DNA from: Callorhinchus milii | Lineage: Eukaryota | Direction of reading: 5' to 3' | Assembly (NCBI RefSeq): GCF_018977255.1 | Contig: NW_024704935.1 | Coordinates: 1 to 64,000, forward strand | DNA length: 64,000 bases | Shown here: one piece after another, positions 609-64,000 of the stretch | Layout of the letters: each line of letters begins with the position of its first letter | Numbering within the stretch: the first letter of the stretch is position 1 | Notes under the pieces: generated by a model | Seen by the model: only the letters and a program-made list of their open reading frames with translations | What the model was told of the DNA's origin: nothing | Databases searched by the model: none | Translations under genes and position numbers: made by a program

Positions 609-850
609 CTGCAAGAATCAACAACACAAAACGTAATATATGAACAAAAAGTGTTAGGTTGAAAATGCAAAGCTTTATAATATCGGATTCTATTGTCTTA
701 GAATTATTTAAAATACGTTTGCACAAAAGCTGTTAGTGCAATTTAAAGTATATCATTTAAGTTCAAAGTGACTTCTTCAAAATTTTATTGATTCTTGAAC
801 CAGAAACGTATTCATTTGCTTAAAACAGTTTCGTTAGAGATGTGAATGTG

Positions 851-5789: not shown

Positions 5790-6274
5790 TTGCCAGGCTA
5801 TATTCAAGATCCACATCCTCACCTACAAGGCCATTCACGGCCTCGCTCCCTCCTCGCTCCCCGACCTACTATCCCCCTATCTACCTGCCCTTACACTCCG
5901 TTCCTCTGGCTCCGGTCTGCTCCACATCCCCCGCCCCAACCGCCCTACCATCGGTGGCGTCGTCTTCAGCCTCTCAGAACCTCGGCTCTGGAACTCTATC
6001 CCCCAGTGCCTTCGCCTGGCTTCCTCCCTTTCCTCCTTCAAGCCCGGTCTCAAGACCTTTCTCTTTGACCGTGCCTTCAGCTCCCCCCTCGACGCTCTAC
6101 CCCCTCCTCGCCCCCTCCCTTCCCTCCCACTGACCATATCCCCCCTCCTCACTCCCTCCCTTCCCTCCCGTCACCCTGACCATTTCCCGTCTGCTCGGGT
6201 CCTGACCCAACTGACCATCGCTTTGGGACGTCCTCCCCACGTGAACGGCGCTCAAAAATTGAATCTTGTTGTTG
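5790..6274 (+). mobile_element. L2 LINE 3' fragment (young family)
   Basis: FKIHILTYKAIHGLAP...LRSSGSGLL...RLWNSIPQCLRLASSLSSFK; ends in gggacgtcctccccacgtg and (ttg)n. Confidence 0.85.
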
Positions 6275-6818: not shown

Positions 6819-8799
6819 TCAATGCTTTACCCTGGCGATTAGATTTAAACATTGAGTGAATGGAAAAAGCAAAACACCATTTCTGAGCTCCTCTCTTAAC
6901 TTCCTCTGGCTCACCGCATAAATACACCTGTTTCTGCCGCAGCTGAAAAGCTGGAGAATAATCCCCACTTCTTCTCTGATGAACAACGTATCGTCGAGAC
7001 CTGTGTAGTAGTAGTTACCTGTCATTCGGCCGTATTTACCGTTGACCACGTAAGTCATCCAGAGGAGAACAAAAGTGCCTGAAATAGCGAAGAGTAAAAT
7101 AATGGAACCCTTGCGACTCTCCATCTCGGACCCTTCCGGTTCCTTGGAATATTTCCAGCCCGGAGCTTTGCACTGACTTTGCTGCTCACCAGTAGGTGTC
7201 TGACAGTGAAAGTATTCAATAGCAGAATCAACAGGAATGGGAGCAAAGTATTCCAAATATATATAAAGTAGGCATAGATTTTCCATCCTAGCAACAAGTT
7301 AAAGCTCTCAGTGTGGACACAGCCCATGAGACGTTGTTAATAACGTAGCGAGGACCAAATATAAAATAATCACCAATGCTCCTCAAACAGTTTATGATAA
7401 ATAATCTGCCGATCACCTTGACCGCGTTTTCTTCAGTACAAAATATTGTTTACAGCTTTTGCCTAAAAATGGCTATGAAGCGATTAAAGGTGAACGCAGC
7501 TGTAAACTACACTGAGCAATCCGTGGAGGCCTTAAATAGGACTATATTGACACGGCAAACTGGGGTGATATTCAGCACCGTGGTGGCAAAGTAAATGTAA
7601 CCAGTGTAGTAACATGTCATACCAAATATGACCAACATCAGATCTGCCGCTGCCATGGCCACCAGGTAGCCAGTGACGCATTTGGGGAGACCGCACTTTC
7701 CTCTGCACAGAATCACGATGGCCACTAGGTTTGCTGCAAGAGAAAGAGAGAATACAGCTTCAGCATTTGCCACTTTAATGTTTAGAAACCAGGTGTATTG
7801 TTATTTCGGAGCAAAACCAATGAAATTAGATATGGACGGATGAATGATAAATTTGCTGCATTTCACTCCACAACCAGGACAGGCTGGACGGAGATGAAAA
7901 GACAATTTCTTTCACAGGTTTTTCACAAAGACTTATAAAAGACTGCAAGCACAGAAACAGGATACTCGGACCAACCATTCTTTCTCAGTGTTTATATTCC
8001 ACATTAGTCCCCTTCCCCGACTTTTCTGCATACCATTATATTTCACTCTCCCTTACCTCTCTATCGTGCATTTTGTTCCTATGAAAGTGAGTTCCGCATT
8101 CTCACTCGTGAAGTTGTTCTTCCAAAATTCCCTTTTGAGTCACTTTATTATTCCTTTGTTCTCCTGGTTACGCACTCCCCATCTTGTGTGAACAGATTAT
8201 TGATACTATCCTTATCAAATCCTTTTGGGGTGTAGTTTACTATCTCGTGGTAAGGAGCTCGCCTCGCAGAGTAGGACATAAACTGCTTTGTGTCGTGTCC
8301 CCCTTGAAGTTCACAGTCCTTACGTGGGTCTTCGACCCACACCTTTCTGAAATATATGTGAGATTGCTACCAGTTGAGCCAGGCTGACACCAACGTGCAG
8401 TATGATTGGCAACACAACGGTGAATTCGATGTGGTTGCATTACACTTTCAGCTCCTTCAGGAAACTTCTCCATATTACCCCTCAATCTCTTCCTCACAGC
8501 ATCTCTGCATAACCTGCTCCAGTTCTCAGCACGGGATCGTGTCCTGTACCATTATGTCTCTGCTCTGTTGGCCTCTGACTCGGAGGGTTATGGTTTCCAA
8601 ACATGTCGTTCCAGTGCAGTGCTGGTGGAGAAGCTGCATTGACCGATATCAACGCACATAAGTGTTATGAAATCAAAACCGCTACCTGCTTGCTTGACTC
8701 AATGTTACTTGATTCTAAGCACTTACTGGGCACCTGAAGGGCTGCGAGGATGGGATAACAAATGTAAGTTATTGGAAAGATAATTGCCTGTCGATGCAT
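6819..8799 (-). pseudogene. GPR139/142-like GPCR pseudogene (exon 1 8727-8799; exon 2 6819-7733)
   Basis: Exon 1 MHRQAIIFPITYICYPILAALQVP with donor A|gtaagt; exon 2 NLVAIVILCRGKCGLPKCVTGYLVAMAAADL. TAG at 7507-7509 where paralogs have Trp, plus further stops and frameshifts. C-terminal part EMESRKGSIILLFAISGTFVLLW in ORF 6819-7286. Confidence 0.9.
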
Positions 8800-15278: not shown

Positions 15279-15308
15279 NNNNNNNNNNNNNNNNNNNNNN
15301 NNNNNNNN
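15279..15308. other. Assembly gap (30 N)
   Basis: Run of N. Confidence 1.
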
Positions 15309-15881: not shown

Positions 15882-18881
15882 ATGGAACTTTCAACGTTGT
15901 ATACTATAATAGGAATCTACTACCCCGTTCTTGTAGCATTTGGAATTCCAGGTACGTCTACTTGATCTATTTAATTTGCTATATTCAATAGGTTACTGCA
16001 TTGGGTGGCAGAAAATAGGAAAGTAGGTATGAGGAGCAGTAGCAGGAGTATGCCATTCAACCACTCGAGCCCGCCTCGCCATTCAACAAGGTCATGACTG
16101 ATCTTCTAACCTAACTCCATCTCCACGACTTGTCCCCATATTCTTTAATCTTTCTATCCTGAAGAAATATATGAATCTCAGTCTTGAATATGTTCAATGA
16201 CTGAGCATCTATAGCCTTCTGGCGTCAATACTTCCATAAAGTCCTACTCTCTGGGTGAAGAAGTGTTTCCTCAACTCTGTTCGAAAGGGCTGACCCTTAA
16301 TCCTAAGCTTGTGATCCCAAGTCACAGGTTCTCCTACCAGGGTAAAGAGTCTCACACGGTCTACTCTGTGAAGCCCCAAGATAATCTAATATGTTTCCAT
16401 AAGACCATTTTACAAAGACTTTTAGAAGTCATTTTACAAAATGACATAACAGGGTGCTGGAAAAAAAAAGTGTGTGAGGCGTGTATTTTGAAAGACAGTG
16501 ACCTATACTTTCATGTGCAGATGAGCAAAATGATTTGAGAATGCAGCTACTTAAGTCAATCAAAGTAGCATCAGAAGTGGAAACGGTTGTGATAAAAGGT
16601 TGACAACGATTTAGAAAGATTTACAAACAATGTACAACACGGAAAGAGACCTCTCATATCAATCAATCCATGTTGGTGTTTATAATCCACGTGTCTTATT
16701 ATTGCCTTCCATAGCCTTCTGTTTCCCTCTCCTACACGCGAAGTTACATCGCCATCTGGAATGCATCTAAATAAATCATTGATTCAGGCGGCAACTCCCA
16801 CAAACTCACCGCGTGAAGCAGTTACTTCTAGTTTATGTTTTTGATTCCATGACCGCTTTCATATATTTGTATCGCGTGGATACTGAATCCCCAAAACTGT
16901 AAGCAGCCCCAAATTGGCACAAGCAACACGGCAGCGTAGATCTATTCCGCGTCCCTGGTCATAATCGCTTCACAGCAGGTCCGCTGCGTTGCCCATCTCA
17001 GTCCATGTTTCATGCACAACAGCTGAAACTCTCATTGAATAACGGATCGATTTCAAGTTCATCACTTTTCCTCGCAAACCAATTCAAATCCTAGCACCTC
17101 CGTCACCTCTCTGTCTCTCTGACCTGCTTACACCACACACCTCTATCTCCTGTCACTCAGCGGTCATGCCACCTACATGTTCCTTGGCCCCTTTTGTCTA
17201 CCATCGCCGGGCATGGTTTCAGATAATGTCCATCTCAACCTCTAGAACTCTGCGTCCATCCCGCCATTAAGTTCCCTGCTTACCTCTCACAAGATCTGAT
17301 CTATCCTTTTTGATAGTTCCTAAAGACTTCCACGTTCTCTCCCAGCTTGACAATCAAGCCCCGCCACAGTTCCACACGCCTTTTAAGGAAGTTTTTCAAA
17401 CGTAATCTGTCCTTGTTGATATAGTACTCTAGGTTCACATAGGAGCATAGATTAGGAAACAGAAGCAATAATTCTGGCTTGGTAGCTCTAGCCGCAGCTG
17501 GAGATATGTATTCGCTTTTGGGCACCGATTTCCAGGAAACAAGCTAAAGCTTTGGAGAGTTGAAAAAAGCTTTATCAGATTGGCACCAGTGGAATTATTC
17601 CGAGAAATTAACTGCGAACGAAAGCAACTGAAACAACTGGAAAGAGAGTTTGCTGAACATAACACGGATTCGCATTTCTAACGAAATTGGTTTAAGCAAA
17701 TGAATACATTTCTTGTTCAAGAAGCAATAAATAGTTTGAAAATGTCACGATGCACTTAAATGACATACTGTAAACTGCACTAACTGCATTTTGTGTGCAA
17801 ACGTTTTTTAAACAATTCTAAGACAACAGAATCCAATATTATAAAGCTTTGCATTTTTAACCTAATACTTTTTATTCATACATTACGTTTTCTATTGTTA
17901 TTGCTTCTCGCAGTTAATTTACTGGCGATTGTGATCCTGACAAGAGGAAAGTGCGGTCTCCCCAAATACATCACTCGCTACCTGGTAGCCATGGCAGTGG
18001 CTGATCTCCTGGTTGTCCTTGTAGATGTTTTGTTGAACAAAATTAACAATCTGTATTTCCCATTAAGTATCTTATTCTACACTCCAGTGTGTAGCGTGAG
18101 AGTTGTGTTAATGTCTGCAGCTATCCACAGCTCTTTGTGGTTCACAGTTGCTTTCACTTTCGACCGTTTTGTAGCCATTTGCTGCCAAAGGTTGAAAACA
18201 AAATTTTGTACTGAGAGAATGGCCACAGTTGTTATTGTAATTCTGTCTGTTTTCAGCTGCTCAGTGAACATTCCTTGGTATTTTACGTTTGATCCTTATG
18301 TTACACTTAACGATATGCCGTGGTACTGTATCATGAAATCAAGCTGTTATACCTTGGACACCTGGAAAGCGTTTGAAAGGCTTCACCGTGTTGTTTCTCC
18401 CATGTTTGGTTTTGCTCTGATTTGTCTGTTCAATGCTCTTATTATAAGGCACATTCTGATGGCCAGTATAGTCCGCAGGAGGCTTCGGGGTCTGAGAAAT
18501 GATCAGAAAACAATTGATTCCGAGTTAGAAAACCGAAAGAAATCAGTAATGTTACTCTTTACCATATCGGGCAGTTTTATACTGTTGTGGACAACGTTTG
18601 TCATTCATTCCTTCAAATGGCAACTTTCCAATTTTAATTATAGCGAAACGTTTGTCAATAATACGCGGTATATTGTTCAAGAATCCGGAATCATGCTTCA
18701 AAGGTTGAGTACCTGTACCAACCCTTGTATTTATGGATTGACTCAGAAGAAGTTTAGAAAGGAGCTTAAAAAATTGTTAGTTTGTCCATTTCATATCTTT
18801 GGTAAATTAATGTCGATGTATCATAAAAAGAAGACAATAAAAGGGTTGGTTACGCACATTGTTGAACTTCAGCAGCATTAA
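15882..18881 (+). CDS. Intact GPR139/142-like class A orphan GPCR, about 345 aa (exon 1 15882-15951; exon 2 17914-18881)
   Basis: Exon 1 MELSTLYTIIGIYYPVLVAFGIP with G|gtacgt; acceptor cttctcgcag|TT at 17913. Phase-1 junction gives GIP-V-NLLAIVIL. Seven hydrophobic segments, FTFDRFVAICC, CTNPCIY, stop at 18879-18881. Confidence 0.9.
16020..16370 (-). mobile_element. CR1 3' fragment in the GPCR intron
   Basis: gcagtaggagtatgccattcaaccactcgagcc and ctctgggtgaagaagtgtttcctcaactctgtt are typical CR1 3' ends. Confidence 0.65.
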
Positions 18882-23655: not shown

Positions 23656-26075
23656 CAACAACAACAACAAGATTCCATTTATAAAGCGCCTTTCACGTCA
23701 GGAGGACGTCCCAAGGCGCTGTACAGTTGGGTCATGACCCGGGCAGGGGGGAAATGGTCAGGGGGAGGGAAGGGAGGGGGGGGGGGGGGGGGGGAGGGAG
23801 CGAGGAGGGGGAAGAGAGTCGAGAGGGGAGCTGAAGGCACGGTCCAAGAGAAAGGTTTTGAGACCGGCCTTGAAGGAGGAAAGGGAGGAAGCAAGGCGAA
23901 GGCACTGGGGATGGAGTTCCAGAGCCTGGTGGCTGAGAGGCTGAAGGCCCGACCACCGATGGTAGGGCGGTTGGGGCGGGGGACGTGGAGCAGACCGGAG
24001 CCAGAGGAACGGAGGGTACGGGCAGGTAGGTAGGGGGATAGTAGGTTGGAGAGGTAGGAGGGAGCAAGCCCTGAATGGCCTTGTAGGTGAGGATGAGGAT
24101 CTTGAAATCAATCCTCTGGGGGATGGGGAGCCAGTGGAGGCGAGCGAGGGTGGGAGTGATGTGGTCGCGGTGTCTGGTGCGGGACAGTACACGAGCTGCA
24201 GAGTTCTGAATGACCTGCAGTGTGGAGGGAGGTGGCGGGAAGGCCGGCGAGGAGAGAGTTCCCATCGTCCAGCCTTGAGGTGACAAAGGCGTGGACCAGG
24301 GTTTCCGCAGCATGAGGGGTAAGGTAGTGCCGTAGTCTGGCGATGTTCCGAAGGTGATGGAAGGCAGTGCCAGTTGTAGTGCGGATGTGAGGGAGAAAGG
24401 ACAGCTCAGGGTCGAACAAAACGCCGAGGTTCCTGACTGGCTTTGAGAGGTGGAGAGTGCAGCCTTGGATGCTGATGGTGTCAGCGCCTAAGTTGCGGAG
24501 GCGCTGACGTGAGCCAATCAGGAGGGCCTCGGTTTTTCGCACGTTGAGCTGAAGAAAGTTGTCTCTCGTCCAGGACTCGATGTCGGACAGGCAGGCTGTC
24601 AGGACATCGGTGGTCGTGGAGTTGAGAGTAGAGGAGGAAAGGTAGAGTTGGGTGTCATCCGCATACATGTGGAAGTTAACTCCATGTCTGCGGATGATGT
24701 CACCGAGGGGGAGCATTTAGAGGGTGAAGAGGAGGGGACCGAGGACAGAGCCCTGAGGGACACCACATGAGACAGTGCGGGGGCTGGAGGAGAAGCCATT
24801 CGTTGAGACAAAGTGAAGACGGTGAGAAAGGTACGACCTAAACCATTCAAGGACAGTGCCTTGAAGGTTGAGGTGGGAGGACAAGCGGTGGAGTAGGATA
24901 GCGTAGTCGACCGTATCGAATGCTGCCGATAGGTCGAGGAGGACGAGGAGACAGAGGGAGCCCTGGTCACAGATGGTCACGATATCATTGGTGACCTTGA
25001 CCAGGGCAGTTTCTGTGCTATGGGCAGCACGGAAACCTGACTGAAGGGGTTCAAAAAGAGAATGGGTGGAAAGGAAAGAGCGCAGTTGGGAGGCGACAAC
25101 TCTTTCCAAGACCTTGGAGAGAAAGGGGAGGTTGGAGATGGGCCGGTAGCTTGATAGCTGCGACGCATCAAGGGAGGGTTTTTTCAGGGTGGGCGTGATG
25201 ATGGCAGTTTTTAATGGAATGGGGACAGAGCCAGAGGAGAGGGACAGGTTGATGATGTCAGTGATATGTGGGGCAAGAAAGTGGAGCTGGTAGATAAGGA
25301 GTGGAGTGGGGATGGGGTCAAGGGAGCAGGTGGTTGGTTTTAGGGATAGGATGAGTTCAGTGACAGAGGGTGGGGAAACGGGTACGAAGGTGTTTAGGGG
25401 AGGATGGGTAGGAGTCGGAGTGTGGGAGGGAAGGGGTGGCTGGTGGGTGGAAGTGAGGGAAGTGACCGGAGCGGATTGTCTGGTTCAGGAATCAGTCTGC
25501 GTNNNNNNNNNNNNNNNNNNNNNNNNNNNNNNNNNNNNNNNNNNNNNNNNNNNNNNNNNNNNNNNNNNNNNNNNNNNNNNNNNNNNNNNNNNNNNNNNNN
25601 NNNNNNNNNNNNNNNNNNNNNNNNNNNNNNNNNNNNNNNNNNNNNNNNNNNNNNNNNNNNNNNNNNNNNTCGGAGGGACTTTAACTGGTGCTGCGGGGAA
25701 TGAATTCATCTAATTTTGAGGGGAGAAGTGATTCTGGAAGTAGCATTAGAGAAGACGGTCAAGTTACATAGAGGGGGAGGGGTTGGGGTTGAGCCGTGGT
25801 GGAGCATTGACAGGAGGTTGAGAATGTGGTTGAGAGGGTGGCCCCGTAGACAGGGAACTTTGGGCCTTGCGGCGAGAATGAGGGATAGGGCAATCAGAGT
25901 GGCTGCTGTTGGAAAGCCAGCAGCGTCTGCAAACTTCGGCGTAAAGGAGGGTTCAAGGAGGTTGAAGGAGAGACGTTACGGGAAGGTTGATCAGGGTTAG
26001 GAGTAAGGAAGGACAGTGGGAAACGACGACAGAGTGGGAATAATGCAGCTTAGAGGACAGTGTTGGTAGCATTTT
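23656..26075 (-). mobile_element. Young L2 LINE, 5'-truncated, RT largely intact, spans the 167-N gap at 25503-25669
   Basis: ORFs with [34 protein letters not shown] and [16 protein letters not shown]; 3' stem-loop and (ttg)n tail at 23656-23720. Confidence 0.93.
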
Positions 26076-31021: not shown

Positions 31022-34000
31022 TTATTTACAGAGGAGCCGGCAGGGGGCGGTGAGGACATCTCGGATTTGCTGTCGGAAGCGGCTCTGTGTCAGGCCGTAG
31101 ATGGCGGTGTTTGTGCAGGTGCTGAGGAGCTGCAGCATCACGCCCGCCTCCTGCAGGATGTACAGAGGATCTTGAGCACCCACCGTATTGGCGTTGTAGC
31201 TGACCATTGGCCAGAACAGGAAGTGAATAATGTACGTCAGCCACAGCAGGACGAAGCTGCCAGAGACGGCGAAGAGCAGAACGATGGACTTCCTGCGGCT
31301 CTCCATCTCCGGGTCCTGCTCACTGCCTCCCGCCCCTCTCCCGCTCCTTCCTGCCCGCAGCCTCTTCCGCGCTCGGCCGGTCACCAGGATGTGCCGGACG
31401 GTGATGGAGTTGAGGAGAAAGATCAGCAGCACCGGCACGAGTGGAGTGAGCGCACGATGAGCTGCCAGAAGCCTGCCCCAAGCCGCCGAGGTATAGAACG
31501 ACATCTTACAAATGCAAAAGTAGGGCTGGTTCCCCAACACGGCCCCGGGCTCAAAGGTAAAGTACCAGGGAATGTTCTTCAGGAGGCAAACGCTAGCGAC
31601 TGATCCGATAATGATTGCCGCACTCCTCTCGGTGCAGAAGCGGAGCTTGAGGCTGGGGCAGCAAATGGCAACGAAGCGGTCGAGGGTGAAACTGACGGTG
31701 AGCCAGACCGAGGCGTCGGTGCAGGCGGACAACAGAGCCACGCGGGAACTACAGACAGGCGTGAGCATCAGGAAGCTGAGAGGGAAGTACAGGTTGTTGA
31801 TTCGGTTGAGAATGACGTCCGTGATCAGAACCAGTAGGTCTGAACCCGCCATCGCCACCAGGTACAGCGTGACGCATCGGCTCAGGCCACACTGCCCTCG
31901 GCACAGAACCACCATGGCCAGCACGTTCACTGTAACACAAAAGCAAATCAACTTGCCTTTACACAGCGCTCCTCATGCTAATGTTGGGGAATGAGGGACA
32001 AAGCTGATGGTTTGAGGAAGACAGTTCCAGTGTTTCGTGGTATGTTGTCCATTGCACGTAAATAAAAACAACTTGCCTTACGCAGCGCTCTTCACGCGGT
32101 GTAGCGTCCCGGAGCGACTAACAATTACAGTGACTGATACTGCGCCAGCGGTAGAGGTAAGTTGACAGTAAGCACGAACAACATTGAAGTGTCATTAGGC
32201 ATTATTTGAATTTTGGCAGGGAATGGGAATGGTGGAGGGATTGATGGAGAGGGTTCCAGAGTTTCGGGGCGTAATGTTTTAAAATATTGCCGCCGATGAT
32301 CAAGCGGAGGGTTCCCGTAGCAGGCCAGAGCTAGCCAAACCGAGGCACAGATTTTGGAAAAAGCCGTTAAGAAAGTTGGCCTATGCCCGGTATCAGGGAT
32401 TTGTGGTCGAATGGGATAACTGAACTAACGGGGTAGCGCCTATAGGGTGGAAGAGAATGCGAGTCTGTTGGAGAGCAGACTGGTGAGAGGATGCAGCCAG
32501 AGCCGAATCCTGGTGTCCCGAAGCAAAGTGTTTCGCTCGCTCCCTTCTGCACATCCATCACTCCATTACACCATTCCAATCTTTTCACGCCTTAGGACCT
32601 CACTGCCTCTCTGACCTGATCAATAGCCACTCCTCGGCTCGGCCATTGTTTGGCTGCATTCAATGTTGTGCCCTGTAGCTCAGTGGTTAGAGCACTCGCT
32701 CTCACAAGTGGGAGACCTGGGTTCGATTTGGAGCAGGGCGAATCGTTAGACAAGTTTGCTAACTCCACACGCCACAGTTTACCTTGCATTAACTCGGAAA
32801 CTGGTTGTTAATCTACTGATGAATCGCTTTTTATTCCGGGGATAATAATTCCTTGGAAAAAATAATAAATTGGTCACTTCCACATCCACAATATTTTTGG
32901 GACACTGCTGTGAGCAATTGAGTGCCACGGTGCGCTAATAGAGAATCAAATCACTTTGCAGTATATTCTGTGAAGCAATTTGAGACGTCTCGAAGACGTG
33001 ATAAGGCACGACACCAAATGCAAGGATTGTTAAGTATTATTATTATTTCAGGTGGAATCGCACTGAATAGATGCTAGCGCACTCGCCTCGTAAATTGGCG
33101 ACCCGGGTTTGATTCCCGGGCAGGTCGATACAGTGGTCAAGTTTATTTACACCTTGCACCGCTGTTTACCCTCAGCAAGATTTCGGTAGATAATCGATTG
33201 GAGATCGCTCTCTGGGCTTAATCTTGTTTCAGAATAAAAATTTGGTCATTCAATCACGTCGTACTTACGGCGAGCTAAACAGAGGGCGTGGAAACTTTCC
33301 TATAGTATCGCCCTGCCTGGCAATCGAACCCGAGTCCTTTTCATTGAAAGGCGAGTGCTCTTATCAATATTATATAACCAATACAGTAATCTACGATTAT
33401 TATGATTATTTTTGCGAGGATTATTTTCGGCAGCCATTCCCTGTAAATGCCTTTGAGACATTTCGATGTAACAGCACTCAATGAAATCGAATTATTGGAA
33501 GTATTCCAAACATTTCGTAACACAAACGTGTCAGAGCAGCAGCTGCCAGCAATAATCTCACCTTCTCTTTCTCAACGACATCCCTCAACGGCTGCTGTAT
33601 TCTACTAATGCTAATACATACATTTGATGTCGTTGGCCGAGATAGCAGGAGAAATGACAATAATAATAATGATAATAATAATAATAGTGAATTCAGTATG
33701 TATTTTGGTAGCGAAAAAAGGCTGACAAGTGCTCACAGCAGATTCCCACACAAAGTTGTTGATTATGACCAAATTGTCATTTATTTTTGGAAGGAATTAT
33801 TACCACCAGAAAATAGATCCACCAATCATCTAACAACCGGCTTCCTACTTATTTAAGTGAACGTATGGGCGTATGGAGTAAATATACTTCCACAATGTTT
33901 CACTCTGCCTGGAATCGAACGCGGATCTCTCGTTTGCACGGCAAGTGTTTAAACACTGAGCTACAGGAAGCCATAATATTTCGAATAGCGCTGGGGATCT

Positions 34001-43264: not shown

Positions 43265-43584
43265 GTTCTTCCCGGTGTTTTCCACAGTCACATTTAACGC
43301 CAATGTCTGTCGTGACCAGGCTCCAGGCTGATTTCTCGTGCTTTCTCTGCTAGACTTGCCAGTGTCCGATTAACCCAAAGTTTCCTTTCTGGAAAAATCT
43401 GCTGAGAAACAGCACAGGGGTTTGTTTCCTGATTTTCCCAGCACCGCGCAAAACAGGGGCGACAGAAGTTGTGGCCGCACTGAAGGTTGACAGCAACAGT
43501 GAAGAAATCCAGACAAATCGGACAAATTATCTTCTCAATACAGATCCCAGCCTGGAGTCTTGAAGCAATTTTCACCATAACCAT
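43265..43584 (-). pseudogene. TRIM-family RING plus start of B-box, pseudogene
   Basis: CPICLDFFT...CGHNFCRPC...CAVS (last RING Cys lost)...VNRTLASLAEKAR; after a frameshift, CGKHREEL runs into the CA repeat. Confidence 0.85.
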
Positions 43585-44365
43585 TTTCTGATTGTAATTG
43601 ACTTTAGTTTCAGTGTGAGTGTGTAGCGGCTCCCAGTGACTTGTCTGTCAATTCCTCTTCTTTAGTCTGTTCTTGTGAAATCAGCTGATATTGACTGTGA
43701 TCCCAGGAAACCATGAGGAAGCCGTGTGCAAAAGCCACAATCTTCTCCTCTTATTACGTTGTTCACGACTGTAAGACCCATTGATATTACTGGGCTGAGA
43801 CACGGGAATAATACAACAAACCATATAATTGATACAGAACCTGTCGCGTTTCAAAGCTCTGCACATTTCTGTACAGTGTAGTGATTGCAGAGTTTTAGTG
43901 AATATACAGCCACTCTCCACACAACCAAGTGCATCAAACAGTCATGTAGTGACTGGCCATCGTTTGGACTTGGCCCAGAGACGCCACGTTTGAAACCTCC
44001 CGTCTAAATCAATGAACATCCTTCAAGGAGGCAAGAAAGGAAGCGAGGTGAAGTGACTGTGGGATGGAGTTCCAGATTATCGGGCCAGAAAAGTTGAAAG
44101 CTCGGCCACCGAAGGTAAGACGGGTATTCTGGAACTCTCTGCCACATTCCTTCCACATTATCCCCTTCCTATCCATCTTCAAGTGGCTCATTAAGGCCTT
44201 CCTTGTGCAATGAACAGTGAGAGAATTAACGTGGAGAGAGGATGAGGGAGGCAAGTTGGCCGTGTAAGTTGGTTGACTCTGCAATATTCATTCAAAATAG
44301 CTCGCTGTTTATATCACATACTGTATGACACTTACATCCTGAGCAAAATATGTTTTCTTACACAC

Positions 44366-48274: not shown

Positions 48275-49245
48275 TACATATAAATGATCTGCATTTGTGT
48301 ATAGAACGTACCATTTCCAGATTTCCGAACGAAATAAAGTTAGTAGATTGATAAACAGTGAGAAGGATACTCACCAACTGCAGGAAGACATAGACAAAAT
48401 AGGAAAATGGGCAGACAAAGGCCAGATGAATTGCAGTGTGGAGAAATGAGACGTGATGCCTTTTGGTGGAAAGAATGAGGGTAGGCAATGCAAGCTATGT
48501 GTACAATCCTTAGGGGGTAACATAACAGAGAGACCTGAGGGTGCAGGTAAATTAATCATTGCAGGTGTCAGGACAGCTAGATAAAGCTGTGAAAAGGGCA
48601 TATGGGTTACTAGGCTTTATAAATAGGGGCACAGAGTACAAGATTAAGGAAGTTATGATTAACGAGTATAAACACTGGTGAGGCCTCAGTTAGAATATTG
48701 CGCCCAGTTCTGGGCAGTACACTTCAGGAACGATGTTAAGGCATTTGATAGGGTGCAGTGGAGATTCACAAGAATGGTACCAGGAATGAGGGATCTTAAT
48801 TATGAGGAAAGGCTAGATAGGCTGGGATTATTCTCATTGGAGCAAAAAAGTATACGAGGAGAACTAATAGAGGTCGTCAAAATCATGAGCGTATTTGATA
48901 GGTTAGAAAGGGAGAAACTGTTTCGACTTGTGGGTGTGTCGTTGAATCGAGTTCACAGATTTAAAATAGTCTCCAAAAGAAGCCGGGGGGAGGTAAGCAG
49001 CGTTTTTTTCACGCAGCGAGTTGTTCGAATCTGGAAGGCATTGCCTGACAGGGTGGTGGTGGCCGATTCGATAACAACTTTTAAAAACGCGGTGGAAGGG
49101 TACTTGAGGTGGACTGGTTCGCAGAGATACGTGAAAAGGGCTGGGGAGTGGGATTGAATTTACAAATGCTCTTTACAAAGTGCTGGCACAGACTCGATGG
49201 GATGAATGGCCTCTTTTTCTGCTTTACGATTCTATGAATCTATGG
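48275..49245 (+). mobile_element. CR1 LINE 3' fragment
   Basis: ORF 48678-49157 RPQLEYCAQFW...RLGLFSLEQK...FFTQRVVRIWKALP; tail attctatgaatctatg. Confidence 0.9.
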
Positions 49246-55019: not shown

Positions 55020-55065
55020 ATGAGCTCCCCGATTTCTCTCAGTCTGCTGCTGGCTGTATTCACCT
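55020..55065 (+). CDS. Ig heavy-chain leader exon
   Basis: ATG...MSSPISLSLLLAVFT + T|gtaagg (phase 1); resembles chondrichthyan IgM leaders of the MRSAISLSLLL type. Confidence 0.88.
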
Positions 55066-55181
55066 GTAAGGTCTATTTTTCTAACAGACTCACTGTGCGT
55101 CTGTGGGTATTATTCTTTCTGTTTTGTCTCCGAGGCACTCGATTTCACAATAATTCATCTTCGGTTATTTATTCTTTACAG

Positions 55182-55216
55182 TTGTCCAGGCCGATGTGGT
55201 GCTGTCAAGTGAAACT
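55182..55216 (+). CDS. Micro-V exon: end of leader plus 8 mature residues (FVQA/DVVLSSET)
   Basis: Acceptor attctttacag at 55180-55181; 35 nt in frame with the leader; directly abuts the heptamer. Confidence 0.85.
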
Positions 55217-55255
55217 CACAGTGATCGGAATCGGGGTTGAACTCCTACAAATACA
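55217..55255 (+). other. V 23-RSS
   Basis: CACAGTG + 23-nt spacer (55224-55246) + ACAAATACA. Confidence 0.9.
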
Positions 55256-55657
55256 CAAGCGGGAGAAGGTAGAACCTCCCTACATAAACTGGCACAGCCG
55301 TGATGTCAATGCAGTGTCTTTAACGGAGATTAAAGGAGAAGCTTAAGACGGATTTAATATCACACTAAAGCTACATAGTGAAACGTAGTTTGATTGGGAG
55401 AATGAGATTTTTTGTGCTGTGATATTCTGCGAATTCAGATGGTCAGTGACACTTTGCTGTTGAGGCGGGTAGGACTCCGATTGGAGGCTCACAATGCGAC
55501 GATTCACATACATCATCTCCGTATACGCTGTTGGAAGTAACAGTTTTCTGTTTCTGTGGAAATGAAGAAACTATTAGACAGACTCCATATCATGTCAGAG
55601 AGGAATAAGCACTTTCAGTAACTTTTGGCAGCCTGTGTTGAGCAGATATCGGTGGTC

Positions 55658-55735
55658 AGTATTTGTATGGGACTGTGTCACTGTGCAAACAACGAGCCAC
55701 GATGCTGCATACAGCTGCATCCTCAGACAAAAAAA
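55658..55735 (+). other. D1 segment CAAACAACGAGC (55686-55697), 12-RSS / 22-RSS
   Basis: AGTATTTGT-12-CACTGTG [D] CACGATG-22-ACAAAAAAA. Confidence 0.88.
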
Positions 55736-56047
55736 ACAGCCACAGAGACTGCTAATCACTTACATCACTACAAAATCCAAAGCACCAAAATAAGTGTTAC
55801 TCAAACTGGATTATTCTCAGAAACAAATTGGTGCATAGCAGATAAATTGAGATTAATTTGATTGCAGAGTGTTGATAAACAAGTTTGAGATTTGATCAGC
55901 TGCTTTCACATAAATCCAAGGCCAGTGATAAATATAAGAATTTATTTTGACGGAAAAGTTATAGGAGGCCTCACTGGAGAATGTGAAATGAGGTTCAGTG
56001 TTTCTCTGATATTATAGATGAATATTTATTAGTACATCCTGTGCAGG

Positions 56048-56113
56048 AGTTTTTGTCATATTGTGTATCACTGTGTAACAGCAACCACAGAGTTAACTGT
56101 CAATACAAAAACC
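56048..56113 (+). other. D2 segment TAACAGCAAC (56076-56085), 12-RSS / 12-RSS
   Basis: AGTTTTTGT-12-CACTGTG [D] CACAGAG-12-ACAAAAACC. Confidence 0.93.
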
Positions 56114-56450
56114 CTTCAACACCAAACCACCTGATATCTCACACAACTCGCTTATGTGGTTTCCTCTGAATATGCGGGGAAATGGTATGTGTAAAACAGT
56201 GTCGACCGCTGAGGAGGCTGCCAGATTTTAATAGGATTAAAGCATCACATTTTCTCTTCAATCTGCTGATGACAAGAAAAAGTGTTCAACAGGAACACTG
56301 CAAAATGGCAAACGTACACACATTTATAAAGTAAACAAAGAGCCAAGCAATTGTTTTAGAAAATTACAGATATATATTGTGCACTGTGTTTGGTTTGAGG
56401 AAACCAACATTTATAGTAATATTGTATTTGTGTGCCCTGCCCGCACAGCA

Positions 56451-56526
56451 GGTTTTTGCAGTGGGCCGCCACTGACTGTAGCACTGTGATAAGGGAACCA
56501 CGGCGTTAACTGGCAATGCAAAAACC
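56451..56526 (+). other. D3 segment ATAAGGGAAC (56489-56498), 22-RSS / 12-RSS
   Basis: GGTTTTTGC-22-CACTGTG [D] CACGGCG-12-GCAAAAACC. Confidence 0.9.
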
Positions 56527-56853
56527 CTTCAACACCAAACCACCTAATCTCTCTGACTTCTCCCTTGTGTGAGTTCCACTGAAGATACGGGGATTAGGTA
56601 CTTTTAAAAGCTGTTGACTGCTGAGGATTTTACCTGATTTCAATAGACATGAAACATTGCATTTGTCCGTCGATCTGCTCCTGACAAGGAAATGTGTTTG
56701 ACAGGAACACTGTAAGCTGGCAAAGATACAAGCATTGAACAGGTAAACACAGACCTTGTGAAATCGTTTACAAAAAGTTGCAGAAATATATCGTGGATTG
56801 GGCAAGTCCATATTTACAGAAATATTGTATTTGTGTGTCCTGCCCTCACAGCA

Positions 56854-56928
56854 GGTTATTGCAGTGGGCAGGCACTGACTGTAGCACAGTGACAAACCAG
56901 ACTACTGCGAGCATAGAAGTGACTCACG
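56854..56928 (+). other. J segment (coding 56892-56928, TNQTTASIEVTH) with 22-RSS; lacks WGxG
   Basis: GGTTATTGC-22-CACAGTG, then 37 nt ending G|gtaaga, a phase-1 donor compatible with the C exon at 60915. Confidence 0.85.
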
Positions 56929-58427
56929 GTAAGAAACAGATACAAACTCACTCGCTACACTGAACTTGTCTCTTTATATATTTGATATGTTCACTTTAAC
57001 AGCTATTTAATGTAATGAACTCCGCGTTGCTGGGTATCCCACAGTTTAATCCATGCTAAATTTGTTTAGCTTTTATTGCTTCCTGCAACCACCGTTTGTT
57101 TATGGATTATTCACCAAATAATTGATTAATTCTTTGTGATCTTTTTGATGTTTTGTGAATATCCCCATCCAGAAAGGTTATACTGATGGACGTTCTGCAA
57201 TGTCTAGTTTCGGTGACTGTCGGCTGCTGAGTTTCGGCTATAACGTTAAAGGGAATTTTATAAAGTGTTTGAAACTATGCTGAACATTGGAAATAAGGGT
57301 CTGAAAGTTGTGGGCTGAATGAAGAGAAGGTTATCAGATAGATTCCATCAAGTATTTCATTCCGTTTTTTTAATGTCATGAACGTGGCTACGATTTAAAG
57401 TGGTTGTTCTGGGAAAGGGGTTGAGTCTGACAGTAAATCGGATTTGTATTGCTACGATATGAGTGAAACTATAGCAGCTCAACCACCACGGACTGAAAGG
57501 TTTTATTTCTGTCAGTGTTAACATTAATGATTTGCTCACAGTATATTTTCCCTAACGATTAGTGAGCAACAGTTTGAGCTCAGGCTTCATTTCAGTATTA
57601 ACAGCGATTCAGTGAACATCACTTCGATTTCACGCCGTATTAGAGACACAAGAGGTCGGTGTTGATCTACTATCATCAGCTTCCTGTTTTACGATAACGA
57701 GTAGCAGAAAAACATTGATTTGTCGATTAAATATTTGATAAAATTTGAATACATTTGCTGTATTTTAAGAGATCCTATAGTTCATGGGATGTTCAGCACA
57801 CAGCGACACTGCAGTGAAGGGGGTGAAACGACGCAGTTACTTATTTTACTGTAACATATTATTTAGTTATTCTGTGTAAGTTTTTGTGCTGCAGGGCATT
57901 GTGACTGTGAGATACATTGCAAAATGTACAATGCTTCACGCTTGATGTGGAAGAACGGTGTGTGAGCTGATTGTGCAGTTACTGGGAGAGTCAGCCGGAG
58001 AGAAAATAATGTTAATTCACTTCTGGAATAATGGATGGAAAGAGTTTGTGCTGGAGATGAAAGGATCGAGTCTAGGATAATGTGTGAGACCCGATTAAAC
58101 AGCTTTGAGCAGTGCAACAGCAAATGGCTGAAGCGGGATGTTTGAGTGTGTGTAGAGCGGCTGGGAGCTGGGTTCGTGTTTAACACACGGTCCCACGGGT
58201 AGGAAAGAGCAAGGTGAAGGTTTGTTTTGTAATGATCTTACCAGAGGTCGAGAAATCCACTGCTGAATAATTGTTATATTCAGTGTGATTTCTGAAACCG
58301 GTTTTCCCGAGTTCTTAAGAAGAAACGGATTCAAAATTTAAAGGAAATTTAAGAATTTTATACGCTTCCATGAAATCTTAAGATAAAGGCATAATGATCT
58401 CCCAGTGTTTATTATTAGCTGAGGATT

Positions 58428-58858
58428 CAACAACAACAACATTCCATTTATAAAGCGCCTTTCACGTCAGGAGGCCGTCCCAAGGCGCTGCACAGTTGGG
58501 TCATGTCCCGAGCAGGGGGAAAATGGTCAGGGTGAGGGGAGGGAAGGGAGGGAGTGAGGAGGGGGAAGAGAGTCGAGAGGGGAGCTGAATGCACGATCAA
58601 AAAGAAAGGTCTTGAGACCGGCCTTCAAGGAGGAAAGGGATGAGGCAAGGTGAAGGCACTGGGGGATAGAGTTCCAGAGCCTAGGGGCTGAGAGGCTGAA
58701 TGCCCGACCACCGATGGTAGGGCGGTTGGGGCGGGAGACGTGGAGCAGACCGGAGCCGGAGGAACGGAGGGTACGGGCAGGTAGGTAGGGGGATAGTAGG
58801 TTGGAGAGTTAGGAGGGAGCAAGGCAGTGAATGGCCTTGTAGGTGAGGATGAGGATTC
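58428..58858 (-). mobile_element. Young L2 3' fragment in the J-C intron
   Basis: Highly similar to 23656-24100; (caa)n tail at 58428-58440. Confidence 0.9.
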
Positions 58859-60484
58859 TTATTTCAGAAGCGAACAATGTCTCTAGTTTTATCATTATTA
58901 TATTCAATGTATTTATAGCTGACAAGACGGAGGCCGCGAGTGTAGGAAACAGAGCCACGGATACCAGGGCCGCTTGTTGTTCAGTGTTTATAGCACCTGC
59001 CTCTGTCTGTCAGCCTGTGAAACATGAATACAACATGACCGCAGTACATTTAACTGTCAGCCAAAAAATCTAACACAATTCAGAATAATACAGGCTGTGA
59101 AGCAAAGTAGAGAGTTATCCTTACTGGGTGTCCTGTAGCTCAGTGTTTAGAGCTATTAACCGACTGCTTTTCTGTGGTTATTAATCACTTCAAAATAATA
59201 ACAATAATAATAATACATTGGTCACTCAATCCATTACTGGTTGTGGGCACTGCCGTCTGCAATCGGAAGCCCTTTTCACCCACAAATATACAGTGAATTT
59301 CCTGTACAATATATTCTGCGGAGCATTTCGAGACGTCTCTAAGATTATATTCTGAAATATGAATGTTGAATATTTCTGTGACTCCTTTTAGCGCTGTGTG
59401 GCTCCTGCAGGTTCCGCTGAACCCAATCACAAATCAGACAGTTTTCCCTGTGAGAGGCTTTTGTGGGGCACAACACAGATTGCAGTCCTTCATTCCTCAT
59501 GTAAAACACTGAATCGGCCCTTTCTGTGGGCTCTCCTGTGAAACAGACAAACAAATATCTGTGGCACGGAAAATATAGTAACCTCACTTGACAATATATT
59601 CTGTGAAGCGCTTTGAGATGTCCCGAAGACGCGCTAAGGCACTATATCAAATGCACGAAATATTATTATTATTATATAATAATTAATGTACAATTTTAAC
59701 ACCACACAGCGGCTGTCTGCTTCGCATCTGATTGTGGCGATTCTATAATCAGTCTGAACGGAGCAATTTGTTTTAATAAATGTCAGAGCCAGAAAGACTC
59801 ATGCTTTAAATTTTCAGACGATTGCATAAAAAATTAAGATTATGCAGCTATCTGATTAACCGTGAAATACATATTTTTGGGCAAATTAAATAGACCATTT
59901 GAAAATAGAAAAAAGTTTTAATTTCAGCTGCGTATCTAAATGGCACGCAGACATAAGTCTTAAAACAAAGTTGCTGTTGTAAGAACAGGAAATATTTTAA
60001 TCTGGAACAGTTGATAATTAATTTTGTAAGAAAAGAGACATTATCGCTGTGTCTAAACTTAAACTGGTCACGTGGTGACTTTGATCTACTACTCAGTCAA
60101 CGCAGCGTCACTGACACCAGATTCTGGGACAGATTTATTTAATGAATAAATCTCTGCATTTGTTTGACTATTTCGCTGCTGAAACGTGACCCATGAGACG
60201 TAGAAAATTCTGGCACATGCCAAATACAGGACATGTCCCACAAACCGTCGTAGACAGAACGGTCAATTTTATTTCGGGAATTTTTGACCGGGAAAAGGGA
60301 GAGAGAGAAAGCGAGTGAGGGAAATGGAAATAGTAAAATGGACAAAGAGCAAAGTAATTGTGAGTGAGATGGTAACTGCCTTCTGTTTTCAAATAGGCCG
60401 TGGGATCTTCGACGTCCGAATGAAGGCAGACGGGGTCTCGGTTTCAAGACTCAATAAATACATTCCTAGATATATACATACATG

Positions 60485-60505
60485 CATACACACACACACA
60501 CACAC

Positions 60506-60542
<37 letters not shown>
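60485..60542. repeat. (CA)n microsatellite
   Basis: Near-perfect CA run. Confidence 0.95.
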
Positions 60543-60546
<4 letters not shown>

Positions 60547-60914
60547 GCAACAGAAAAACTAATACAGTTCAGATACGAACGGGATAGCAATGACGTGACC
60601 CAGTTCAGTTGGCCCGGAGAAGACCGAGGAAGGCTCAATTGTAGCCAACAGGGCAACGAGAATACCAGCGTTTTTAACTCCACACCAACTTTGGAGTTTA
60701 GCATAACAGTTGAGACAAAACGATTGCGGAGATTGCAAGGTTTTTTTTTTAAAAAATGTTTGTTTACTGGGAAGATTAAAAGAGAAAAGCCAATGAGAGA
60801 GAAGATGTCACTTCATGGCTGAGTTCAATGTCTGTTTCAAAATTAATATCAATTTCACGCAACAAAAAATGCCCCAATCGAACTAAGTATAAACTATTAT
60901 TTAATGTATTGCAG

Positions 60915-61241
60915 GTAATCAAACGAAACCGTCACCCCCAGTTGTTATCCTCACACAGCCTTCCTCTGAAGATATCACAATGCATAAACCGGTAACTGCT
61001 GTCTGCTTAATATCCGGTTTCCATCCGGACAAACTGAGTGTTAAATGGCTGAAGGATTGGCAGCCCATCATCTCAGGTATTGTGACCTCTTCCTCGATTA
61101 AAGAAGACAATATGACATTCAGCACCAGCAGCCGCCTGACTGTCCCCGCCAGAGAGTGGAGGAGTGGCGTGGTTTACACCTGCCAGGTGTCCCATGAACC
61201 CACCCAGACCATCATTGTCAAGAACATCACCAAGTCCTCAG
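60915..61241 (+). CDS. IGHM: IgM constant exon Cmu2
   Basis: gtattgcag|GT...TCA G|gtaggg, 327 nt. GNQTKPSPPVVILTQPSSEDIT...AVCLISGFHPDKLSVKWLKD...TSSRLTVPAREWRSGVVYTCQVSHE matches shark Cmu2 motifs (FHPxS, WLKDG, TSRLTVPAREW, YTCQVSH). Confidence 0.88.
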
Positions 61242-61897
61242 GTAGGGGGCACGGCACCATCTGACACACACGGCAACAACATGGCACTCAGTATCCTTTC
61301 AAATGTCCACTTGTGGGAGCTGCTGCGTCAGTTTGACTTTCACCCTTTTGGGATATTTCAACCCGAACAATAAATATGTGAACTTTGACCGAAAGTTTAT
61401 TTATCTGTACAACATGAGGAAATCGCGCCCCAATCCTCACCATGTTAACAGGAGATGGCCAGGAACACCATGTTTCTAATCTGCTACTCAATTGTAGATC
61501 TCGCATCTGTCACAGGATCACGTGACTGTGAATTGTAATTCCCATATTCTACACTCTTCTTCAACATCTGCTTTCACTAAAATTTCTCGTCCCAAAGCCA
61601 CAATTTGGGTTAATCCGAATATATGTACAATTAAGTGTACAGTTGCAGCTCATCCAATGCATGCGTTTAATCCGCAGTTTTGTCAGTCGGACGTAATTGA
61701 AAATCAATTAGCAGATTATCATTGAATGTTTCAGGAAGCCTTATTCAAATCTCCAGTAAATTATTCCAACACCAACTGATACTTATATTAAGACACATCA
61801 TTCTGTGTTCAGCTCATCCGGAATTGTTTAACTTGATTGAATAGGAAATCCTGGAACTTGGTTTTTATTTGTGTTTCATTTTCTTTTGCTTTTCTAG

Positions 61898-62209
61898 AGT
61901 GTGAGCTTCCCATTGGAAGTGTCAAGGTCTCTTTGCTGCCACCCTCACAGCAACAGGTTTTGATGGAATCCTCTGTAACGCTGACATGTGTTGTGGTTAA
62001 TGCACCTCCTGACGTCACCGTGACTTGGACACAAGGAAATACACATTTACAGTCTGGAAATGGGAAACCGTCTGCTACTGAGCCTCAGGAAGTGATCAGT
62101 AAATTAATCATTTCTTCACAAGACTGGAACAGTGGGAAAGAATTCTTCTGTGTTGCCAGCCATGACGATATGCCAAATCCAATCAAAGAAATGACATTGA
62201 AGAGGAAAG
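61898..62209 (+). CDS. IGHM: IgM constant exon Cmu3
   Basis: ttttctag|AG...AAA G|gtgagt, 312 nt. ECELP...LLPPSQQQVLMESSVTLTCVVVNAP...VTWTQ...WNSGKEFFCVASHDDMPNP; the N-terminal Cys is available for an inter-chain disulfide. Confidence 0.9.
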
Positions 62210-62720
62210 GTGAGTAGCCAGGTTTCAGGAAATAAATCATTTATTTATTTACTTATTTATTTATTTATTTATTTATTGTAATTTCAGGTTGAAGACGACA
62301 GATGCAATTGTGAATACAATTATATGCTCTCTGTTTTTTACTGCTTGACGATAGATAAATTTATTCCCTCGCATGCTGGCCAAAAACCAATAGATAGATA
62401 TAACTTGATAAGTACATTAATTCACACGAATTATATCGAAGCAATATCTAGTCATTACATCTGGAGGCTATTTACATATTTTCTTATTGAGTTAAGGTAG
62501 CCACATCTAAACTGCTGGTCACTTGGTGCAAATAATAAAGTGCTGTCGGGACATTAGAATCCACGCTAGAGTTCCCAGTTACACCCGCAGTTACAAACCA
62601 CTGAGCACAGCCTGAACAGATACACACATTATTCTCAGATTGTTCTGCAGGACCTGGAGCTTCAAACTTCTCTCAGATTCACATCATCAGTGTACTGATT
62701 CGCTTGTTTACTTCCCACAG

Positions 62721-63112
62721 TTGAGTACACAAAACAACCGTCGGTGTATCTCCTCCTCCCCTCGGCAGAGGAATTGTCTGCTCAGTACACTGTCACCCTC
62801 ACTTGCCTGGTGAAGGACTTCGCTCCCAAAGAGATCTTTGTGCAGTGGACTGTGAATGACCAGGTGATTGATGCTAAGAACTTCAGGAACACTGAGGTGA
62901 TGGCAGACAGTGCAGATCACAACTATTCCATGTACAGCATGTTGTCCATCTCAGCTGGAGAGTGGAACAGTGGTCTCTCCTACTCCTGTGTGGTCGGACA
63001 TGAAACCTTCCCACTGAAGACCCTGACCAGAACCGTTGATAAATCGAGCGGTAAACCGAGTTTTATAAATACTGCCCTTGTCCTGGTGGACAGCATGAAT
63101 ATGTGTCAATAA
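62721..63112 (+). CDS. IGHM: IgM constant exon Cmu4 plus secretory tailpiece
   Basis: ttcccacag|TT; VEYTKQPSVYLL...TLTCLVKDFAPKEIFVQWTVND...YSCVVGHETFPLKTLTRTVDKSS/GKPSFINTALVLVDSMNMCQ*. Internal donor G|gtaaac at 63050/63051 for membrane exons, which were not found in the window. Confidence 0.93.
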
Positions 63113-63203: not shown

Positions 63204-63209
63204 AATAAA
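63204..63209 (+). terminator. Poly(A) signal for the secretory form
   Basis: AATAAA 92 nt after the tailpiece stop. Confidence 0.7.
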
Positions 63210-63689: not shown

Positions 63690-64000
63690 TCGCACTCACA
63701 TCCGCTCCCGCTCACACACACACAACTTACAGTCACACTCACACGCACACACATCCACCCAGATCCCCACAAATTCACACACACTCACTCATACATCCAG
63801 ACCCACACACAATCACTCACACCCAGGCCCAGACACACTCACGCACACTGAATTCCACCCAGACCCACCCAAACTCACATGCACTCGCATCTACCCAGAC
63901 CCCCACACACTCACACACACATAATCATACACCCAGGCCCACATACCCCCATACCCACCCAGGCGCAGAGACACTCACATGCATTCAATTACACACAGAC
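63690..64000. repeat. CA-rich degenerate repeat
   Basis: cacccagacccacacacactcac-like units running to the window end. Confidence 0.85.

Follow-up and report, generated by a model that had tools for sequence, protein, structure and literature searches.

The closest described relatives of the locus analysed here, an immunoglobulin (Ig) M heavy-chain cluster in a 64,000-nucleotide (nt) stretch of the elephant shark genome (Callorhinchus milii, contig NW_024704935.1, positions 1 to 64,000; hereafter the window), include heavy chains lacking either the first constant domain (CH1, or Cmu1 in IgM) or the variable (V) domain. In chimaeras, a ratfish cluster without CH1 and with a duplicated Cmu2 was described as a likely heavy-chain-only antibody, according to the account of Rast et al. 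1998 given in PMC3149040. C. milii itself has gene models in which a VHH-like, germline-joined V is spliced to Cmu2 (P0013, P0016) or to Cmu4 (P0048, P0050), with no CH1. In the models of the first pair a joined V and joining (J) segment runs into Cmu2; an earlier note on this DNA had mentioned a CH1-less, V-bearing chain reported in elephant shark. The second framework region (FR2) of the CH1-less models is hydrophilic and camelid-like (WKRQFPGKQRENFL or WYRQLPGKQQENLL). The lineage of P0048, P0050 and P0024 has the J motif VGRGT and a tailpiece without an N-glycan sequon (NLA). V-less secreted forms of IgW and IgD are known in fishes, and in IgW-deltaV of dogfish and nurse shark the leader is spliced straight to C-delta-1 (PMC5192425). 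Nurse shark IgM1gj lacks Cmu2 and not V, in agreement with the same note. Three or four of the approximately 13-15 nurse shark IgM clusters, roughly a fifth to a quarter, are pseudogenes (PMC5192425, PMC2435157).

The window carries a holocephalan IgM heavy-chain cluster, of rearranging type in origin, that is most likely now unable to make an antigen-binding domain. All that a V fold and pairing with a light chain require has been lost (V core, WGxG motif of J, Cmu1) and the lesions in V and J are disabling. The parts serving recombination, splicing and secretion are retained. We regard the cluster, with a probability of about 0.5, as a V-dead relic whose Fc exons were either orphaned recently or homogenised with those of sister clusters. 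It does not look like a long-dead pseudogene. The earlier note had presented the same arrangement as a new form of antigen receptor, a somatically diversified peptide carried by a mu Fc. The claim of a new form has to be narrowed, CH1-less IgM and V-less IgW and IgD being already known, but the full combination (no V, no CH1, an unjoined NAR-like array of three diversity (D) elements and an intact Fc) has no counterpart in the literature searched.

The V domain is reduced to a stub. The leader is split by a phase-1 intron of 116 nt, and its two exons together share 15 of 19 residues with a C. milii leader and 13 of 19 with that of Hydrolagus colliei. In exon 2, the codons DVVLSSET directly abut a perfect heptamer, CACAGTG. 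DVVL corresponds to V residues 1-4 of the C. milii IgM heavy-chain V (VH), while the last 12 nt of the stub could be the final V codons, diverged first framework region (FR1) or junctional filler; they include CAAGTGA, similar to the CAAGAGA that follows the conserved TACTGTG. About 95 codons are missing from what would be a complete VH exon, running from FR1 to the Cys-Ala-Arg end. The unrearranged reading frame of exon 2 is terminated by a TGA at 55238-55240, as had been noted. Neither tblastn with eight complete IgM chains as queries nor custom profile hidden Markov models (HMMs), built from V and Cmu1 domains and run on all six-frame open reading frames (ORFs) of at least 20 amino acids (aa), identified a V core or Cmu1 anywhere in the 64-kb window, which confirms the loss of both. 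The truncation may correspond to a single deletion of approximately 290 bp that left the heptamer perfect.

The J segment is also crippled. Compared with the J DNA of a Chiloscyllium punctatum IgM cluster (L001 9972-10019), used as a yardstick, it carries a frameshifting deletion of 11 nt, so that its two halves lie in different frames: the 5' half keeps GACTACTG and GAC TAC TG (D Y W), while the 3' end GTGACTNACG is kept in front of GTAAGAA. The WGQG codons now read TGC GAG CAT AGA (C-E-H-R), with 4-6 substitutions, and no WGxG motif remains. The damage to J therefore goes further than the loss of WGxG originally reported. A second NQT sits in the J reading frame. The Chiloscyllium cluster itself (L001 9104-10019) has its V, D1 and D2 joined in the germline, and its J has an in-frame TAA directly before the WGQG codons.

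The constant (C) region can be assigned from its sequence to holocephalan IgM Cmu2-4. Compared exon by exon, the first C exon aligns to Cmu2 of full-length chains and not to Cmu1. Cmu2, Cmu3 and Cmu4 with the tailpiece together encode 343 aa, with AG/GT borders in phase 1; the open C exons, the splice sites and the polyadenylation signal are all as the earlier note gave them. This Fc is 72-77% identical to C. milii IgM, 58-60% to that of H. colliei and approximately 50% to those of elasmobranchs, and its closest solved structure is the human mu Fc (E = 8e-59). Its distinctive stretches are the Cmu2 start GNQTKPSPP and the tailpiece FINTALVLVDSMNMCQ; peptides unique to it come, for example, from FINTALVLVDSMNMCQ or NQTKPSPPVVILTQPSSEDITMHK. 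The trees leave the Cmu2-4 protein in a basal polytomy of the holocephalan sequences and place it with neither of the CH1-less C. milii lineages. No match to transmembrane exons was found in the 888 bp between the stop codon and the end of the window.

Between V and C, the recombination signal sequences (RSSs) form a complete array. Their positions come from a mechanical scan of both strands, in which nine RSS-like matches scoring at least 13/16 fall within 1.7 kb, a number that would be approximately 0.11 at the density seen elsewhere in the window (P ~5e-15). The anatomy of the cluster described before is thereby borne out far beyond chance. All heptamers begin with CAC, the spacers are 12/22 for D1, 12/12 for D2, 22/12 for D3 and 22 for J, and every adjacent pair is compatible with the 12/23 rule; the regular spacing reported previously also holds, with gaps of 312-402 bp between elements. 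The D elements are A-rich, and D2 and D3 each include a TAA in one frame. The 3' RSS assigned earlier to D1 is present at 55698-55735, but a better one lies at 55741-55778. The latter has the higher score and aligns with the D2 and D3 3' heptamers; its use could make D1 55 nt long with all three frames open. The additional 12-RSS-like motif at 55070-55097 is oriented toward the V stub and may be a chance match or a relic.

The interval between D2 and D3 and the one between D3 and J form a tandem repeat, with 71-84% identity between the two copies. D3 is a hybrid, with a 5' RSS copied from that of J and a coding end and 3' RSS copied from D2. This structure shows that D3 arose by a tandem duplication with its breakpoint at the heptamers, and from the divergence between the two copies the duplication is old. 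The duplication of the D2-to-J interval gave an ordinary V-D1-D2-J cluster the pattern of IgNAR in one step. Even as a relic, the cluster shows a one-step, heptamer-to-heptamer route from V-D1-D2-J to the three-D layout of IgNAR type.

The cluster shares with chondrichthyan IgM clusters the split leader, D1, D2 and J elements 250-500 bp apart (with an extra D3) and Cmu2-4 with the penultimate Cys, but has no complete VH exon, in-frame J WGxG or Cmu1. Like other CH1-less IgM of chimaeras, it is an IgM-type cluster with Cmu2-4 and a secretory tail. However, those chains have a full V with a hydrophilic VHH-like FR2, whereas here there is no V; it thus lacks Cmu1 as heavy-chain-only antibodies do, without their autonomous V domain. 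In the C. milii CH1-less models the V is germline-joined to J, whereas here D and J are unjoined, and the ratfish cluster has two copies of Cmu2 where a single one is found here. The spacer pattern is identical to that of IgNAR, V(23)-(12)D1(23)-(12)D2(12)-(23)D3(12)-(23)J, but the leader and C exons are those of IgM, neither an NAR-type V nor NAR C domains are present, and D3 is visibly the J-RSS/D2 hybrid. As in IgW-deltaV and the secreted IgD of catfish, in-frame joining of the leader with constant exons is possible and would give an Fc-only secreted chain; those forms are splice variants or dedicated genes of IgW and IgD whose transcripts are documented, whereas this one is IgM, also CH1-less, and known from sequence. 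The pseudogene IgM clusters of nurse shark (G6-G8, G2C) are likewise stand-alone clusters with a defective V(D)J part. Here, in contrast, C exons, RSSs and splice sites are intact and the defects are selective for V-domain parts: the V(D)J lesions of a decayed pseudogene are present but the neutral decay of the constant exons is not. Mu or gamma chains without V and CH1, secretable without light chain, occur as heavy-chain-disease proteins and as the mouse D-mu protein. These are somatic products of tumours or pre-B cells, whereas the structure described here is in the germline.

If the cluster is a V-dead relic, the V would have been lost in a single germline event. This could have been a deletion within V that brought codon 4 next to the final V codons, or an "open-and-shut" cut by RAG at the V RSS followed by deep resection of the coding end, which would explain the perfect V heptamer. 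RAG would probably still be able to join the D and J elements, and since every exon is in phase 1 the transcripts could still be spliced in frame, but the joined products would be without a V fold and would not be antigen receptors. The healthy state of the Fc may have one of two origins. The cluster may have been disabled recently by a few large events, the J lesion being a single complex one; or gene conversion or a recent recombination may keep the C exons like those of functional sister clusters. The insertion of interspersed repeats in the intron between J and Cmu2 (58428-58856, 59206-59340 and 59570-59680) supports the relic interpretation, as do the proportion of pseudogenes among nurse shark IgM clusters and the isolated position of this cluster among non-Ig genes. 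Pfam profiles detected no domain in the ORFs of this intron, and so no replacement N-terminal domain. No protein with more than 77% overall identity to the Fc, and hence no transcript of the cluster, was found among 5.8 billion proteins; the micro-V/RSS junction has no exact match in JGI metagenome contigs.

Some local features of the Fc also look like signs of relaxed constraint. Of six N-glycan sequons that relatives conserve, this Fc has lost four, compared with 0-2 in the other holocephalan sequences, and the tailpiece has drifted: its 20 residues include 4 of the 21 residues private to this Fc (Fisher P = 0.028). The sequon changes are NVT to TVT, NIS to IIS, NKS to DKS and, in the tailpiece, NIS to NTA; a private NQT has been gained at the very start of Cmu2. 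The loss of the tailpiece sequon was rejected as proof of decay, as the same sequon is lost in the V-bearing C. milii lineage of P0024 and P0048 (NLA there, NTA here). The Ig promoter octamer, absent within 1 kb of the leader, was likewise rejected as a test of function: its absence is weak evidence because the Chiloscyllium cluster has no exact octamer either.

The state of the rest of the cluster weighs against a relic. The Fc exons show no decay: their 1032 nt are open, none of the five splice sites is damaged, and all conserved Cys and Trp residues remain, among them the extra Cys at the start of Cmu3 and the tailpiece Cys. At the 61 sites at least 95% conserved in cartilaginous fishes there are two changes, both conservative, and private residues amount to just 21 in 337 alignment columns. 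The terminal branch of the Fc in the maximum-likelihood tree is 0.16, compared with approximately 0.25 root-to-tip (as the sum of the printed branches) for the C. milii lineage backed by cDNA; in the same tree, the branch length of the ratfish chain is 0.57. No damage is seen either in the leader and its splice sites, in any of the eight RSSs, in the J donor or in the poly(A) signal. When neutral change was simulated on the real C exons and splice sites, they remained intact with probabilities of 0.24, 0.075 and 0.002 at neutral divergences of 1%, 2% and 5%, respectively. For the 13-nt J core, the probability of four or more substitutions arising independently is 1.5e-4 at 2% divergence.

The four to six changes of the J core would require approximately 10% divergence or more if they were independent neutral hits, whereas the intact Fc tolerates approximately 2% at most. 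A simple model in which everything has been neutral since the death of V therefore fails unless something more is assumed, namely that the J event was complex, that gene conversion acted or that the cluster is of chimeric origin. Three ways out remain. The J lesion may be one complex event and the death of the cluster recent; the C exons may have been refreshed by gene conversion, or newly recombined onto an old dead V-D-J; or the Fc may be under selection for a use that is independent of V. The pattern is less surprising given that the locus was picked from a genome-wide scan for looking like this.

The third way out could take the form of an invariant V-less mu Fc, an unlikely reading but one with precedents. 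Since the germline micro-V exon has no usable donor, leader exon 1 would be spliced to Cmu2, giving MSSPISLSLLLAVFT-C-NQTKPSPP..., and the product would function in an innate or a regulatory capacity, with D and J as leftovers. The donor of the leader exon matches the Cmu2 acceptor in phase (phase 1), and the frame is open. Such a chain would resemble IgW-deltaV of dogfish and nurse shark as well as the secreted IgD of catfish that lacks V (PMC5192425), and it would account for the conservation of the Fc with no need of V, J or RSSs. However, the good RSSs are not required by this model, the signal peptide would lose its usual FVQA end, and the lost sequons and drifted tailpiece argue against a strong constraint on secretion or polymerisation; no protein matching such a product was found among the 5.8 billion. 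Continued use of the Fc exons would make this the first known IgM locus that functions with no V domain at all.

The diversified peptide-Fc of the earlier note is very unlikely, although its structural part stands. V-D1-D2-D3-J joining would give a secreted, light-chain-free, dimeric or polymeric Cmu2-4 with a diversified N-terminal peptide of about 25-35 residues. Selection would, with the same slight probability, have maintained the Fc, the RSSs and the splice sites and left the determinants of the V and J fold free to go. The compatible RSS pairs with their CAC heptamers are consistent with this, as are the intact leader with its VQA|D cleavage motif, the open J frame, and the V stub and J lying in frame with Cmu2 in the splice frame. 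In the absence of CH1 no retention by BiP would be expected (from the CH1 biology that PMC3149040 cites), and the inter-chain and tailpiece Cys are kept. The conservation of the Fc after the constraints on V and J have gone is, moreover, awkward for a simple decaying cluster. The functional claim nevertheless found no direct support, and several features look rather like relaxed constraint or accident: the D elements appear unselected (rich in A, two of them with TAA), J was altered by a frameshifting deletion, the Fc has lost four sequons, including that of the tailpiece, which has drifted, and transposable elements lie in the J-C intron. Neither a transcript, a rearranged junction nor the orthologs and sister clusters with the same micro-V that the note had proposed to look for were found in protein collections or JGI metagenome contigs. 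A short peptide without structure would also be poorly suited to binding antigen, and the window shows no membrane form through which clones could be selected. An entirely new format of receptor has a low prior probability, and the choice of this locus from the scan was made post hoc. Were it true, this would be the first antigen-receptor-like molecule with its diversity on a free peptide and not on an Ig fold.

It is similarly improbable that the C exons serve as a switch acceptor, a VDJ from a foreign cluster being joined to these Cmu2-4 through the J-C intron to give a CH1-less chain with V while the local V-D-J is dead. Isotype switching between clusters is documented in sharks, in the account of Zhu et al. 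2012 given in PMC5192425, and CH1-less IgM with V exists in chimaeras (PMC3149040; C. milii models P0013 and P0016). Such use would be consistent with an Fc conserved despite dead V and J. However, such switching is not known from holocephalans, there is no other Ig cluster within at least 55 kb upstream, and the light-chain V (VL) interface of a conventional VH would be exposed if it had neither CH1 nor a light chain. Ig clusters are multi-copy and hard to assemble, but an artefact in which the V core and/or Cmu1 was collapsed or deleted in the assembly, or a deletion private to one haplotype, is the least credible reading, since there are no runs of N in 55-63 kb (those of the window are at 15279-15308 and 25503-25669 only), the V stub abuts a perfect heptamer in frame, which is not what a collapse looks like, the J lesion would stand with or without a collapse, and the intron bears unique repeat insertions that speak for a real and separate locus.

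Interpreted as a V-dead relic, the cluster would still represent a third, independent-looking CH1-less IgM lineage in chimaeras. It would also provide a natural example of a V exon cut short next to an RSS that was left untouched, possibly a footprint of RAG in the germline. The coordinates of its elements are given in Table 1.

Table 1. Elements of the IgM-type cluster in the C. milii window
Feature	Position	Strand	Remarks
Leader exon 1 (MSSPISLSLLLAVFT)	55020..55065	+	46 nt, phase-1 GT donor
12-RSS-like motif (GGTCTATTT-12-CACTGTG)	55070..55097	+	leader intron; heptamer 7/7, nonamer 6/9
Exon 2: leader end (F)VQA and 8-codon V stub DVVLSSET	55182..55216	+	
V 23-RSS, CACAGTG-23-ACAAATACA	55217..55255	+	RSS scan
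D1 5' 12-RSS	55658..55685	+	heptamer 7/7, nonamer 7/9
D1 coding CAAACAACGAGC	55686..55697	+	may reach 55740 if the second 3' RSS is used
D1 3' 22-RSS of the earlier note, CACGATG-22-ACAAAAAAA	55698..55735	+	heptamer 5/7, nonamer 7/9
Alternative D1 3' 22-RSS, CACAGAG-22-ACAAAATCC	55741..55778	+	heptamer 6/7, nonamer 8/9
D2 5' 12-RSS	56048..56075	+	heptamer 7/7, nonamer 8/9
Two tandem units of ~410 bp (D2-to-D3 and D3-to-J intervals)	56064..56895	+	spacing 403-413
D2 coding TAACAGCAAC	56076..56085	+	
D2 3' 12-RSS	56086..56113	+	heptamer 6/7, nonamer 9/9
D3 5' 22-RSS, J-type	56451..56488	+	
D3 coding ATAAGGGAAC, D2-type	56489..56498	+	
D3 3' 12-RSS, D2-type	56499..56526	+	
J 22-RSS (GGTTATTGC-22-CACAGTG)	56854..56891	+	RSS scan
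Crippled J, splice-frame reading TNQTTASIEVTH	56892..56928	+	followed by gtaag; GT donor intact
J-Cmu2 intron, 3986 bp	56929..60914	+	no Cmu1 exon
Cmu2 exon, 327 nt, phase 1	60915..61241	+	72.5% to P0001 residues 247-347; 85% to P0003 Cmu2
Cmu3 exon, 312 nt	61898..62209	+	starts with conserved extra Cys (ECELP)
Cmu4 exon, secretory tailpiece GKPSFINTALVLVDSMNMCQ and stop codon	62721..63112	+	penultimate Cys kept, tailpiece sequon lost
AATAAA polyadenylation signal	63204..63209	+	92 bp past the stop codon

The Ig cluster stands alone; around it lie GPR139-like receptor genes, fragments of retroelements and an exon for a RING finger. The GPR139-like genes form an array of single-exon G protein-coupled receptor (GPCR) ORFs at 1-732(-), 6822-7800(-), 17784-18878(+) and 31025-31972(-), which are 82-91% identical to C. 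milii proteins. The best matches of these genes and of the Ig exons (72-85%) all being C. milii sequences, the window comes from a chimaera, though probably not from the C. milii gene set of the protein database. The copy at 31025-31972 is 91% identical to C. milii P0177, while that at 6822-7800 is spread over several frames and is probably a pseudogene. A TRIM-type RING finger exon (Pfam zf-RING_UBOX and zf-C3HC4_4 profiles) is located at 43297-43647(-), 11 kb upstream of the Ig leader and on the opposite strand.

ORF fragments of long interspersed nuclear element (LINE) type are found at 3660-5170(-), 24111-25484(-) and 48672-49154(+). The Pfam RVT_1 profile confirmed 3660-4505 and 24720-25484, and one of the fragments adjoins the masked or gap run at 25503-25669. 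Of the repeats in the J-Cmu2 intron, that of approximately 430 bp at 58428-58856 is 90% identical to 23659-24100 and 80% identical, in inverted orientation, to 5809-6274. The two shorter ones (59206-59340 and 59570-59680) resemble short interspersed nuclear elements (SINEs) and occur many times in the window. Low-complexity (CA)n or CA-rich runs are present upstream of Cmu2 (60476-60542) and at the 3' end of the window (63700-64000), and a run similar to (CA)n also occurs at 42.9-43.2 kb.

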